DNA from: Pavona decussata
Taxonomy: Eukaryota
Direction: 5' to 3'
NCBI GenBank assembly: GCA_977016875.1
Contig: CDRNST010000318.1
Coordinates: 3,286,001 to 3,350,000, forward strand
DNA: 64,000 nt
Shown here: in pieces, positions 1-21,514 of the stretch
How the letters are laid out: each line of letters opens with the position of its first letter
How positions within the stretch are numbered: the first letter of the stretch is position 1
The notes under the pieces: generated by a model
Told to the model about the DNA's origin: nothing
Database searches by the model: none
The model's input: the letters and a program-made list of their open reading frames with translations, nothing else
Position numbers and translations under genes: made by a program

Positions 1-299
1 CTTGATCACTTAATCATCCACTTGACGGTCACAACAAAGGTCACTCACCGGAAAGAAAAAAAAACAAACAAAACAGATGAAATTCTGAGCGATAGTCGCC
101 CTCTCCTCTCAGTTGATTTAGAATTTATATCTGGGAGCAAAGTTTGCTGATTGGAAGAACAGCGGTTTCTGGTTTCTAATTCTTTTTTTTTCCCAGAGGT
201 AAAAACACTGACCACAATTGGCCATGTTTTCGTTGATGACGGAGAAGTACACATGTTTCATAACTTTAACTTTGTTGTACAACGCCTTTCGGACTTTAC

Positions 300-12150
<11,851 letters not shown>

Positions 12151-13129
12151 AATTTTTTCAAGCAAAATAAAGATTAAAATAAAATGAAATGAAAAACAGA
12201 GTTCTAGGCAGCAACAAAATTCCCGCCATCTTGAAAGTGTTTGCAACAGCAACCAGGCCTCTCAGCCTCGGTTTCGGGTTATAAGAATGTGTGACAACCT
12301 CCGTGACAGCTGGAAACTTATAGACTGCAAGCAGTCCCTCTCTGGATAGTTGAGAGGTCGCGCGAAATAGCCGAGCGCGAAAAAAACTGGAGCAAACGAG
12401 CGGTGATTAGATCTTTCACAGATCCTGCGTATACTTGCAGCATTTTCGTTGTGCGGTTCCTTACAGATTGTTCAGCAGCTGAAAATTATGGGAGTACCCC
12501 CCCCCCCCCCCGGGCCTACGACTGACCTGTTGCAGGCGTTCACATACAGCAAACGACAGAAATGACCATGTTTACCCTGCATTTACCAGTCGCTGTTTTC
12601 AGTCTCTCTAAATTGAGTAGTTTAGTGTATCAAAGGTCAGAATTGCGCTATTCCCATTTATGAACTAAGTGTTTGGTTTTTCAAGCAAACTTAAACGCAA
12701 ATCTCACATTTACCGTTTGCCCGTAAATAGGGGATTCTAAATCCCCTGGTCTAATCTTTCTGTAAAAAAAAAAAAAGAAGTATTTTGCGAGCGGGAAAAA
12801 GCAAGGAAAGACTCGGAGGCCCGGGGGGGGAGGGGTTAGTCCCCTTTCTGGCTGTACGGGGACGTGCCGCTGGTACGCGAGTCTGTCCTGGACCCGTCCT
12901 AAACAGGGTATGGTTGCAAGACTGTCGTTGAGTATTTGGCAATCCGAAATCAGAGACGTTTATCTGTATTTATTTCAGTGAACAATGCTTCACGTCAATT
13001 GTTTCCACCTAAGGTTCACCGCTGAAATTTTGGGATTTTTCGCCATCACTTCTAGGTAATACATTATTTTATCTGAAAATACAAAACTGAATGCAAGGCT
13101 GGCACTACGGCAAAGGGCAGATTTATTGG

Positions 13130-16738: not shown

Positions 16739-17754
16739 GTTGATTAAGTGAGCACCCTCGATCTGTCGCTCTCCCTCCCAGAGGTGGTGCATGGGGTAAG
16801 AAACCAATGAATATTTCCAGAAAAAAACAAGGGGCATTGAATTTAATCCATATAATTTTTAGTATAAAGGAGAATACTTTCTCCAAAATTAAAGTTAGTT
16901 TACTGGTGTTCAAAATGTATAAATGGAAAATTTGGAAATTATCAGGGCTCAATGTTTAAAGGAACCATGTCAGCTATTTTTAGTAACACTTTGAAAGTTA
17001 AGTCACATTTGTCCCCAATGTAAATCTGAAAACAAAAAAACACTTTTGTTAAAAGTAAGGCCAGGATCACACCTGCAGAAAAAAATACTTTGTCTTACAA
17101 AACAAAAACTGTCAGGAACAACTTGTCAATTTTTTGTAATGACATTTGCAAGACAATGCTCAAAGGAAAAACTTACGTAAAAGAATTTTGCACAATTAAT
17201 TTTAATAATAATACACTCCTACTTTCAGTTAGATTGAATGCAACAAACAAACATTCAGCCACCAGTGTGGTGTATGTTGGCCTAGCACGTAGAAAACAAT
17301 CACATGAATACTCCATGAGGAAAGTTAAAGTTGGTACAGACCTGGTGCATTTAATATTTCCCCAAAACACCTGCAATTTACACAAAGTGTAAACCGTTTG
17401 GTTTTGTGTAATGGTAAACTCAACAACGAAAGCAAATCACTTACATTTCAAATCAACTCAATTTATTTCATCAATAAATACTGAAACAGTGGGCATTCCA
17501 AACAGCTTAACTGTGACAATAGAAAACTCATCAACTGAGATGATAAACACACATGTTTTGCAAAAACTTTATATTAACAATTCTGTATTTTACCTTTGAA
17601 TGTCAAGCCAAGTACCAAAGTTGATACTTTTTAGTGCATTAACATTTGGTATTTCTAGATTTACCCTTATAATGCATTAATGTGAGAAACAAGAAGCTTG
17701 ATTTAGAAGTTTAAATCTGACTGAATTGTGATTTACACGTTGCATGTTTACTTG

Positions 17755-20736
17755 TCAGCCCTGAGCTTTCTCTGCTCTCATTGTCTTCACATGTTGACAC
17801 ACCTCTACCACGCGCTTGTCATGGGCTGCAAGCCTCTCCTTTTTCTTTCTCAACTCTGCTTTCCGTTTCTCTTCAGATTGCTCCAGCTTCTGTTTGAGCT
17901 TCTCTTCCCAACTTTTCTTGGCCTCCTCCACAAGCAAATCCACAAACTGTCGTGCTTGTTCTATCTTCTGTGACTTTATTCGCAGTCGCTCCTGTAGTGC
18001 ATGGATCTGTGCCTGGCGTTTTTCTTCTGTTGTCGCCATCTTCTGCTGTAAGTTTTCCTCTGTGGTCTTGGACTGCTTCTCAATGCTCTCCTGCAAAGTA
18101 GCCAATACTTCATGTATGTGCTTTTCATGAGCTTGCCATCGCTCCATCTGGGCCTTGCGCTGTAACTCCAGTTTCTCTTTGGTCAGAGCTTCCTTCTGTT
18201 GAATCTTTTCTTCCAACTTCTTTGCATGCAGTGCACTTATCTCCTGCAACTTTGCCTGCACTTCTTTGATGTGCTGGTCCTTTGCATGTAGCCGATCGAT
18301 CAGGGCTTTAATCTGGGCTTCTTTATTCTCAATATGCAAATACATCTTTTGCTTGTGCTTTTCTTCCACTTTTCTGCTTTGCTCTTCCTCTAATTGTTGC
18401 TTGGTTAGCTGGACTTGACTGATTCGCTCATTTTTGGTTGCAACCCTTGCTAGCATTTCACCTTCTATGCTCTGAAAATAAAAGATAAACAAAACATGTT
18501 TGTTATAGGTACATGTTTTCTTGCCTGGGTTAACTGAAATATAAAAGAGAAAAATATAGTAAAGTAAGTGCGCAGTAATGGATTGTTGCGGGTAGTTATT
18601 TACCGGGGTGCAACTGGGTAGATAATTATGGTTAGCACGTAACTCAAACTTGTATTTTTCCCTGTGCTGCCAGTTTGTATCTTATGTATGATACAACACA
18701 GTTGCCCAGTTGTTCCATACAAGATAATTTAGCTGCTGTTTCCGCTTGTTAATTAAAATTGATTGGAGTTTAGACTTTACTTTCAACAATTTATCATGAA
18801 TCTGTTAGAACAGTGGGGATTCCCTTTATTGTTATTATATATTTGCAAGTCCACTGGGTGTTGAGGGCGGCAGCAGTAAGGTCCTGGGTGTCTGAAGAGT
18901 GGATAGCTTGTCCAGTGGATAAATTGCTATCTACTGGATGAAGTTACAGTGAAGATGAACAGCTACTCAGAGTTTGAAGATACTAACACACAACAGGTTT
19001 ATGACATGCTACTTTCCTTGAAGAACCAAACTTTCCAAAGCTTAATGACCTATTATGTTGAAATAAATGCTGGGTTTTATAGATCAAGTTGTAAAATAAA
19101 ATTTAATACCTCCAGCATTTATTCAAGGTAACATTTATTTGAGGTCTGGTATTTATTTGAACCCTTTTCAAGTTAATATTAAACACTCTGACACTGTTTT
19201 AAAAAAGTCCCTCAGTTGTAAAATAGTCATGTTGAGTGTGCAGCTAAATCTAAAGGCCAATTAGATTATTTCTCTGTCATGTAATACACAGCTCCACTTT
19301 GAACAATGGCAAAGTCAACATATCTATCGCCTTTGTGATTGAATGGCTAGCTCAAAACAGCTTTAAAATAGTTTTTGAAGATATCATTAATATATCAATG
19401 TTTGCAAAGAGCAAATAGTGATCGAATGAAGCTGAAAATTTGTCTTCGAGGAGAGGTCTTGGAGCACTTAAGGGTGAACAGCTTTTTGGCCCCAAGAAAC
19501 AGGAATTTGAACTACATAATTTTCAAAAGTCCAAATGCCGAAAGGGTTGATTGACATATTAGAGAGACCAATTTTTGTGTCTAAATCATGCCAATGGACA
19601 TTTTTTAGTCCTAAAAGCAGAGATAAAGAATTAGAAGATTTTGTTGAATTTCTTTGCAGTGATGATCAGGAATAGTTTTGAAACAGACTTGACATAATTT
19701 GAATTAGAAAATAACTCATGCCTCATGCACACTAATAATGATAGGAAATGAGCTGTTAACTATTCTGTTCAGAAAATAATTTCTGTTGCTGGTAAATGTC
19801 TCATTGCCTGTTCCGGAGTTAGGGTTAGGGTTTGGGTTAGGGTTAGAGACTTTGTATGAATTTGGGGAATGCGATCTCAGAATTAATGACCTTTGTATGT
19901 ACCGGTGCTCCTATTGATAGCAATAGCGACTACCCTGAGCATTATAACTAATTAAATGTGTCTGTCTGTCTGGAATTTGGTTACAGGCTGGTTACTACAC
20001 AATGAAACTTAACCAAACTTGGTAAACTTACTAATGTTTATGTGATCTTTCTGGTGATGGGGTTCATTTCTTCATATGACACAGTTTGAACCATTTGTAA
20101 ATTAGGGCCCAGTCCCTTTATGAACTAACATAAATTACCATATTTCAACTGCTTCGTTCTCAAAAACGAGTATGGCGACCCCCTCTTTTTATTTTAATTC
20201 TGGAACTTGTATAGGTTAGCAACTTTACGAAATTTCGTTCATATTTTAGAGGGATGGTCTTAAGAGGGTAAAAAGTTTGGTTACAACTGTCATTTATGAG
20301 ACTTCTCTTGGCTCGTCATTGAACATTCGTTTTATACCACGTTGGGTGTAAAAGATCAAATTATTAACACGCATGCTAATACATAGACTTAGTAATTTCT
20401 ACCTTTCTTCTTTTTTCAGCTGCTTTCATCTTTTCTTCTATCTGCTGTTTGTTTTCTTTTCCTCTTAGTGGAGTGAGACGCGGCTTTCTCGCATTTTCCA
20501 CCTTGGGGCTGAATATGACTTCGTACGCCACGCTGCCGTTGCTCGAAGAAGTTTCTTTGTGACCATGAACAAGAAAATTCCCGGAGTTAGGAAAACGTCA
20601 ACTAGAAAACTTCGCTTTGACCTTTTACAAAGCACTATCAAACGCAAATCAACTGGAGTGTCGTTAGGCTAAAGTATTTTTGTTTATGAAGAAAATAAAA
20701 CTTGAGCTTACCGCGAGCCTCCACCACAGACGCCAT
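17755..20736 (-). CDS. Stathmin-family tubulin-sequestering protein (~297 aa) with five tandem 51-aa tubulin-binding repeats
   Basis: Exons 20712-20736 (MASVVEAR), 20403-20554 (GSVAYEVIFSPK...QIEEKMKAAEKRRK, compare stathmin GQAFELILSPR...EEIQKKLEAAEERRK) and 17755-18471 (SIEGEMLARVA...KMxxxxENKEAQIKALIDRLHAKDQHIKEV). Phases 1 and 0 join in frame; the intron after RRK matches the vertebrate stathmin position as I recall it. Confidence 0.88.
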
Positions 20737-21514
20737 TTTTGTCAAGTTGAACAAAACTGGACGGACAGTGAGATTCTCTGATACACAATGACTCGAGAAC
20801 AACAACTAGTCGTCGACCCAATCTGCTATCGGCTGAAGACAAGTCTAAAGAACTATGTAGTACAAATTAACTGAAATTTTTGCTACGACAGATCAACCTC
20901 ACCAAAACGCGTGGTTGCGTGTTTCAAATTTTCACCCATACACGTGATAGCCAAGAAAACATTTGATTGGTCAATCCTAAATCGCGTCTAGGCGAAGGGG
21001 TTTTACTATTTATTCACTGATTGGTCTGTAAGTAAATCTTTTCCTGATATACATAAATTTTAAATATATACATTGCTTTGTGGCTTGTGGAACCTGTGAG
21101 GTGCTGGAGGGGTACTGGTATTCTACTATGGCTACTATTTTGTCGCCAGCGCTTTGGATTCTTTGTGGTCACAATGGCGACTTGAGCGACTAAAAAAGGA
21201 TAAAAACAACTCAGTAGGACCGGAATGTTATGCCATGAAGACGTGCTTTATGCGAAGAATTTTGCCTATTGTGGAATTTTACACCAAAAGCGCCATCAGT
21301 CGTCGCATAATTTATTTGTTTGAATCCTAAATAGAATATTTTTGCAATATGTAAGTGCTTTTTTTTTTCTGTGTGTGTTACTCTCGCATGCTCGCAGTGG
21401 TATTCGCAGATCAGATAAGCTAAACTTTTTTCGATGAATGCCGCGCCCTTTCAAATAATTGGGGCCATAATCACACTATTAATTTGATCTTTCCTATTAG
21501 GTTGAATGTAGAAA
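20737..21514. promoter_or_regulatory. Probable bidirectional promoter between the stathmin-like and aldolase genes
   Basis: Divergent ATGs ~780 bp apart; two TGATTGGTC (inverted CCAAT) at ~20964 and ~21018; YY1-like CGCCATTTT overlapping the stathmin ATG; probable 5'-UTR intron 21351-21500. Confidence 0.5.

Follow-up and report, generated by a model that had tools for sequence, protein, structure and literature searches.

The stretch of DNA analysed here (the window) comprises 64,000 nucleotides of the stony coral Pavona decussata (contig CDRNST010000318.1 of assembly GCA_977016875.1, positions 3,286,001 to 3,350,000), and on its minus strand lies a three-exon gene for a protein of 297 residues. 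The locus is the single canonical-type stathmin gene of this coral; no second stathmin locus was found in the 602-Mb genome with the Pfam profile and an orthologue as queries. Stathmin is the protein that holds unassembled tubulin and thereby sets the free-tubulin pool, and its complex with tubulin is a standard tool of tubulin crystallography. The long helix of the coral protein is built of five repeat units, and we regard it as close to certain that this is a genuine five-unit stathmin. Multi-unit stathmins as such are already known (some Drosophila isoforms have four units); the five-unit architecture is shared by corals and sea anemones, and no description of a five-unit stathmin was found in the searchable literature, most subscription papers lying outside that reach.

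The gene and its transcripts

The coding parts of the three exons (Table 1) fit together in phase: the 25 nucleotides of exon 1 and the 152 of exon 2 make 177 nucleotides or 59 codons, to which exon 3 adds 238, giving the 297 residues. Both introns have the expected sites (GT after 20712 and AG before 20554, GT after 20403 and AG before 18471), and the open reading frame (ORF) that holds the ATG begins at 20805, preceded by an in-frame stop. A first reading of the sequence had proposed that these exons are joined, and transcripts of related corals support this, indirectly but strongly. Complete ORFs of 295–299 residues are found in transcript contigs of 1.3–2.3 kb and include the residues across both junctions. 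The RefSeq records of Porites, Pocillopora and Montipora are the same proteins as the transcripts, while the coral of a fourth transcript is 84% identical in nucleotides to the gene in the window. The nearest related-coral cDNA matches the window in three blocks that end at the predicted sites (21036–20729, 20555–20403 and 18473–17752); in the cDNA L004, nucleotides 856–1011 fall on 20555–20403 and nucleotides 1010–1731 on 18473–17752. The 5′ untranslated region (UTR) of the related-coral cDNAs L004–L006 aligns without a break from 20729 to 20885–21036 (67–71% identity), so exon 1 carries about 300 nucleotides of 5′ UTR beside its 25 coding bases. An exon of 25 bp, as first described, is therefore right for the coding part and too short for the exon as a whole.

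Many gene calls in ENA and Logan (232–233 residues) begin at an internal methionine of exon 3 and lose the N-terminal cap (N-cap), and the Logan contigs L007–L013 are unspliced genomic DNA. These could be taken to mean that the gene model is an artefact: splicing would not connect the exons in this species, and exon 3 would be translated alone, from the internal methionine. However, the related-coral transcripts with a full ORF span both junctions, they align in blocks that respect the predicted sites, and the GT/AG sites are present with agreeing phases; we consider such an artefact extremely improbable.

In RefSeq, the X1 and X2 isoforms of Pocillopora (P0036 versus P0033) and of Stylophora (P0038 versus P0035) are distinguished by an additional alanine where exons 1 and 2 meet. 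Judged from the sequences, this looks like tandem acceptors 3 nucleotides apart; the exon 2 acceptor in the window has a single AG.

Table 1. Features of the stathmin gene, in window coordinates
Feature	Position	Strand	Remarks
Exon 1, 5′ UTR part	20737–21036	minus	Upper limit approximate; possibly with proximal promoter; from cDNA alignment
Exon 1, coding part	20712–20736	minus	25 nucleotides, Met1 to first base of codon 9; ATG at 20736
Exon 2	20403–20554	minus	152 nucleotides; N-terminal cap, regulatory linker, first 12 residues of unit 1
N-cap hairpin motif	20505–20537	minus	11 residues, within exon 2 translation
Linker	20472–20510	minus	Ser24-Pro and Thr36-Pro, candidate proline-directed kinase sites
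Exon 3	17755–18471	minus	Rest of unit 1, units 2–5, stop 17757–17755; first codon is Ser60 of RRKS
Unit 1	18355–18471 (39 C-terminal residues) and 20403–20438 (first 12)	minus	Register from autocorrelation and repeat hidden Markov model (HMM)
Unit 2	18202–18354	minus	51 residues; alone 27.5 bits, PF00836 positions 99–135
Unit 3	18049–18201	minus	51 residues; no Pfam match alone
Unit 4	17896–18048	minus	51 residues; alone 28.7 bits, PF00836 positions 99–132
Unit 5	17758–17895	minus	46 residues, C-terminal; alone 19.1 bits, E 0.0013, positions 99–134, below cut-off
Conserved 3′ UTR block	17431–17504	minus	cDNAs L004–L006 align at 77–87% identity, outside the coding region

Stathmin identity and the five helical units

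Family membership was assessed with the Pfam Stathmin profile (PF00836, cut-off 24.7 bits), against which exons 2 and 3 were searched separately, or full-length orthologues were used. Exon 2 scores 35.1 bits over profile positions 10–59 and exon 3 scores 85.7 bits over positions 61–135 in four stretches, the second match continuing the first at the splice junction. With both exons above the cut-off, the stathmin identity proposed by the sequence-only reading holds, as does its N-cap motif, which is present in exon 2. The central V-A of this motif and the stretch L/F-S-P-K-V are invariant in nine of nine coral orthologues, and the motif is also found in sea anemones. The S-P and T-P of the linker, together with the RRKS at the start of the helix (Ser60), are placed comparably to phosphorylation sites of STMN1 and are invariant across the nine coral sequences. 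The regulatory phosphorylation sites of STMN1 are Ser16, Ser25, Ser38 and Ser63; from motif position, Ser24 and Thr36 of the coral protein may be the equivalents of Ser25 and Ser38, and the coral protein has no basic site of the Ser16 type. Met-Ala-Ser opens the protein encoded in the window and every full-length orthologue from corals and anemones, and orthologous transcripts encode a similar N-terminus.

The annotation of the orthologues could suggest something quite different. Their RefSeq product names are ‘golgin subfamily A member 6-like’, ‘calponin homology domain-containing protein’, ‘cingulin-like’, ‘centrosomal protein of 164 kDa-like’ or uncharacterized, and the helix has a low-complexity composition rich in Glu, Lys and Gln, so that one might see here an ordinary coiled-coil protein of the golgin, cingulin or CEP164 kind whose likeness to stathmin is compositional. 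We judge this very improbable: Stathmin is the sole Pfam family above the cut-off, it is matched by two exons in the correct order, and the match includes the non-helical N-cap region. No golgin, cingulin, CEP164 or other coiled-coil family appeared in Pfam even at E values up to 1, with the exons or with single units as queries, and UniProt gives the name Stathmin to the Stylophora and Porites orthologues. Mislabelling by automated pipelines had been anticipated, and both the wrong RefSeq names and the calls that lack the N-cap agree with that; the short exon 1, offered as the cause, does not simply account for it, since full-length 297-residue RefSeq models are misnamed as well.

The division of the helix into units is seen most directly in the autocorrelation of exon 3 (scored with BLOSUM62 and compared with 2000 shuffles), which peaks at lags of 51 (1.32), 102 (1.04) and 153 (0.92) residues, with identities of 33%, 29% and 27%. 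The best lag in the shuffled sequences averages 0.24 ± 0.10 with a maximum of 0.79, and none of the 2000 reaches the observed value (z > 10). Autocorrelation and the repeat HMM agree with the period, the count of five and the unit starts quoted in the sequence-only reading; its exact 51-residue period requires one correction, unit 5 having only 46 residues. Unit 1 is the most divergent, with 5–10 identities over 34–39 positions when compared with the other units. Units 2, 4 and 5 match PF00836 in one register, all from profile position 99, and unit 3 is matched inside two-unit pieces (units 2 and 3 together on profile positions 67–134, units 3 and 4 on 60–132). AlphaFold2, run on exon 3 as a monomer with a 24-sequence alignment, predicts a single helix over residues 2–237 with a mean predicted local distance difference test (pLDDT) score of 91.9. 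The exon encodes no proline, and its glycines are confined to residues 4 and 238.

Conservation and history of the units

Relatives were collected by word-based and exhaustive profile searches and by cluster look-ups in a library of 1.84 billion proteins. Five-unit proteins of 295–299 residues occur in Porites, Pocillopora, Stylophora, Montipora and Acropora, and in the alignment of 12 scleractinian sequences the helix contains no more than two gap cells. Sea anemones also have five units (Exaiptasia: 292 residues, Actinia: 294, Actinostola: 290), spaced by 47, 51, 51 and 51 residues with a unit 1 that is shorter by four; Actinostola has a further four-residue deletion in unit 3. When coral and anemone units are scored against each other, anemone units 1, 2, 4 and 5 do best against the coral units of the same position (unit 5 narrowly) and unit 3 is ambiguous. 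In a tree of repeat units, built on 36 columns, the anemone units are not placed within the position-specific coral clades. From these comparisons, the count of five is common to stony corals and sea anemones and is probably older than their split.

Purifying selection acts on each of the five units. The ratio of nonsynonymous to synonymous substitution rates (dN/dS) per unit is 0.03–0.35 where dS is defined, and is 0.08 for unit 2 against the nearest cDNA. Invariant positions make up 37–39% of units 2–4 and 17–18% of units 1 and 5. Unit 3 is furthest from the Pfam profile, yet it is the most conserved among corals (lowest dN, 39% of positions invariant). Some models from Porites, Acropora and Stylophora carry long N-termini, which we considered as alternative membrane-anchor isoforms. 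This was rejected, because the extensions share no sequence with each other; they are treated as model artefacts or species-specific first exons.

In the whole library, 216 clusters match at E ≤ 0.001, and other phyla have units beyond two. Four are present in Mytilus, the thrips Frankliniella, Gordionus and several further sequences, and three could be detected in Helobdella, a leech, as well as in one cluster from the tick Ixodes. The model from the beetle Acanthoscelides has, by eye, four units and possibly a degenerate fifth, of which the repeat HMM detected two only. In the unit tree, unit 1 of all phyla forms one clade apart from the other units (support 96/90); position-specific clades are recovered within corals, the deeper links among units other than unit 1 are unresolved, and units 2 and 3 of the thrips arose by recent duplication (100/99). 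The distal units of the sampled bilaterian multi-unit stathmins, among them those of Mytilus, Helobdella, Ixodes and Gordionus, are mostly 47 residues apart, whereas the coral spacing is strictly 51. Taken together, the two spacings and the unit tree make independent expansion of the units at least as likely as the reduction of the vertebrate two-unit form that had first been proposed.

Beyond the coding region, the 3′ UTR block of Table 1 contains 45–80 nucleotides conserved with cDNAs whose coding sequence is 84% identical, and it may be a regulatory element. The genomic Logan contigs L007–L013 (SRR286022xx) are 91–93% identical to positions 16970–20075 of the window, intron 2 included. Their exon-3 ORF is nearly identical, falling in the same 90% cluster as P0001, itself 99% identical to exon 3; judging by these identities, the contigs represent a sister taxon or a divergent population whose exon 3 is the same. 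Intron 2 has a short, degenerate telomere-like run at about 19818–19846, with CCCTAA units on the minus strand. Directly downstream of the stathmin gene, on the same strand, tblastn outlines an RTEL1-like helicase gene in at least 13 blocks of exon size (window 282–12162). In the 1157-residue model KAK2549772.1 of Acropora cervicornis, named ‘Regulator of telomere elongation helicase 1’, approximately the first 277 stathmin residues are fused to RTEL1; the model is probably chimeric and indicates that the gene order is conserved.

Proposed tubulin binding and comparison with known systems

By analogy with vertebrate stathmin and RB3 (two units for two tubulin dimers), the Drosophila isoforms (four units) and the engineered scaffold R4 (four units for four dimers), the most likely arrangement has the helix running along a curved series of α/β-tubulin dimers joined head to tail, with one dimer per unit and the α-tubulin end capped by the hairpin. 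A single molecule would then tie up more than two dimers, five at most, which would be unavailable for microtubules. The dimers would probably be released when the linker and the start of the helix are phosphorylated, with Ser24 (SP), Thr36 (TP) and Ser60 (RRKS) as candidate sites. With standard dimensions, a helix of about 248 residues is some 37 nm long, and five tubulin dimers of about 8 nm come to some 40 nm. That every unit binds tubulin, the number of dimers held and the control by phosphorylation are what we infer from these known systems. A five-unit stathmin with sequestration of the stathmin type, up to five dimers, is in our judgement the best explanation as a whole and a reasonably probable one. 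The binding of more than two dimers in the manner described seems somewhat probable, while we put forward the binding of exactly five tentatively.

Several observations weigh against this explanation. Unit 3 alone gives only chance matches in a search of PDB sequences and none in Pfam. Unit 4 deviates near positions 28–32 from the motif common to units 2, 3 and 5. Conservation along the coral sequences shows no periodicity of 51 residues (r = 0.04, permutation p = 0.28) and thus provides no independent sign of identical constraint on the five units. Finally, the RRKS serine is missing in sea anemones. The first three of these speak against equal function of all units and would be expected of a five-unit stathmin in which only some units bind (units 1 and 2, for example, or two to four), the others being a spacer, a stable single α-helix or the site of another partner, with a stoichiometry below five. 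Single α-helix domains are very rich in Glu, Lys and Gln, which make up 45% of this helix, and the title of Lachkar et al. 2010 speaks of ‘variable’ stoichiometries for Drosophila stathmins. We nevertheless regard such partial binding as rather unlikely: no part of the protein is better conserved than units 2–4, the helix is essentially free of insertions and deletions in scleractinians, the anemones keep the spacing of 51 over units 2–5 (the Actinostola deletion aside), and the register is identical to that of R4, a scaffold crystallised with four dimers.

The five-unit form with stathmin-type sequestration brings the highest stoichiometry known from nature, so far four, to a possible five, and it would give structural work a ready-to-use scaffold for a curved protofilament of ten subunits. 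In its boldest form, it would make a stoichiometric complex with five dimers, the longest natural scaffold of a curved protofilament known, with a length kept since before corals and anemones separated; a further possibility is that multi-unit stathmins are ancestral and the vertebrate form is reduced. We put this larger picture forward tentatively. The number of units is a stable, lineage-specific character (Hexacorallia: five, spaced by 51; several protostomes: four, spaced by 47; vertebrates: two), and the evolution of stoichiometry thereby becomes testable. The gene also exposes a systematic annotation error, in which RefSeq proteins are misnamed and many calls are without the N-cap exons.

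Of the vertebrate stathmin representatives in the library, the comparison used two fish-like sequences (P0083 and P0131), besides P0065, apparently the R4 sequence. The vertebrate stathmins (stathmin/Op18 and RB3, STMN1–4) share with the coral protein the capping hairpin, the SP/TP linker, the RRKS at the start of the helix and the long helix of 51-residue units, coral units 1 and 2 covering profile positions 10–135. Vertebrates have two units and four genes, whereas the coral has five units and one gene was found; in the coral models no conserved N-terminal membrane-anchor isoform is seen. Deng et al. 2024 included Acropora digitifera in a stathmin phylogeny that was trimmed to 145 columns, with repeats unmentioned, and defined the STMND1 clade by an N-terminal MGCGPSQ lipidation motif (myristoylation/palmitoylation; PMC11238091). 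STMND1 resembles the coral protein in its stathmin-like domain and broad metazoan distribution, but the coral protein begins Met-Ala-Ser and is without MGCGPSQ. Its basic linker (Arg/Lys-Pro-Arg-Leu) resembles the published consensus of the STMND1 nuclear localisation signal loosely. No STMND1-type gene was found in this genome with one MGCG-type representative as the sole query.

Closer in unit number are the Drosophila stai isoforms, natural stathmins with more than two units. The figure of up to four repeats given in the sequence-only reading agrees with a review (PMC5090033), which states that some isoforms have four binding regions; four tubulin-binding regions are also what Lachkar et al. 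2010 report, as cited there and in PMC3694009. The extra exon of stai (exon 6) is alternatively spliced, whereas the coral units lie, but for the first 12 residues of unit 1, in a single exon, and five are present in every orthologue.

Closest in structure is an artificial protein. The best match in the PDB is chain I of 4F61, ‘Stathmin-like domain R4’, which aligns without gaps over 175 residues (53 identical, 85 positive). A 240-residue representative of our protein library, P0065, has the same 51/102 period and the same offset on exon 3 as R4 and appears to be the R4 sequence, so that synthetic constructs would be present in a library of ‘natural’ proteins. The entry 4F61 is a tubulin–stathmin oligomer (PMC8944587), stathmin-like domains having been designed for one to four tubulin dimers and the structures of their complexes solved (PMC7491153); the origin of R4 is given in both papers as Mignot et al. 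2012. R4 is RB3-derived and has four sites, whereas the coral protein, 30% identical to it, occurs in nature and carries five units that have diverged. The period of 51/102 and the register of R4 are nevertheless those of the coral helix, and R4 shows that units added in this register add bound tubulin dimers.

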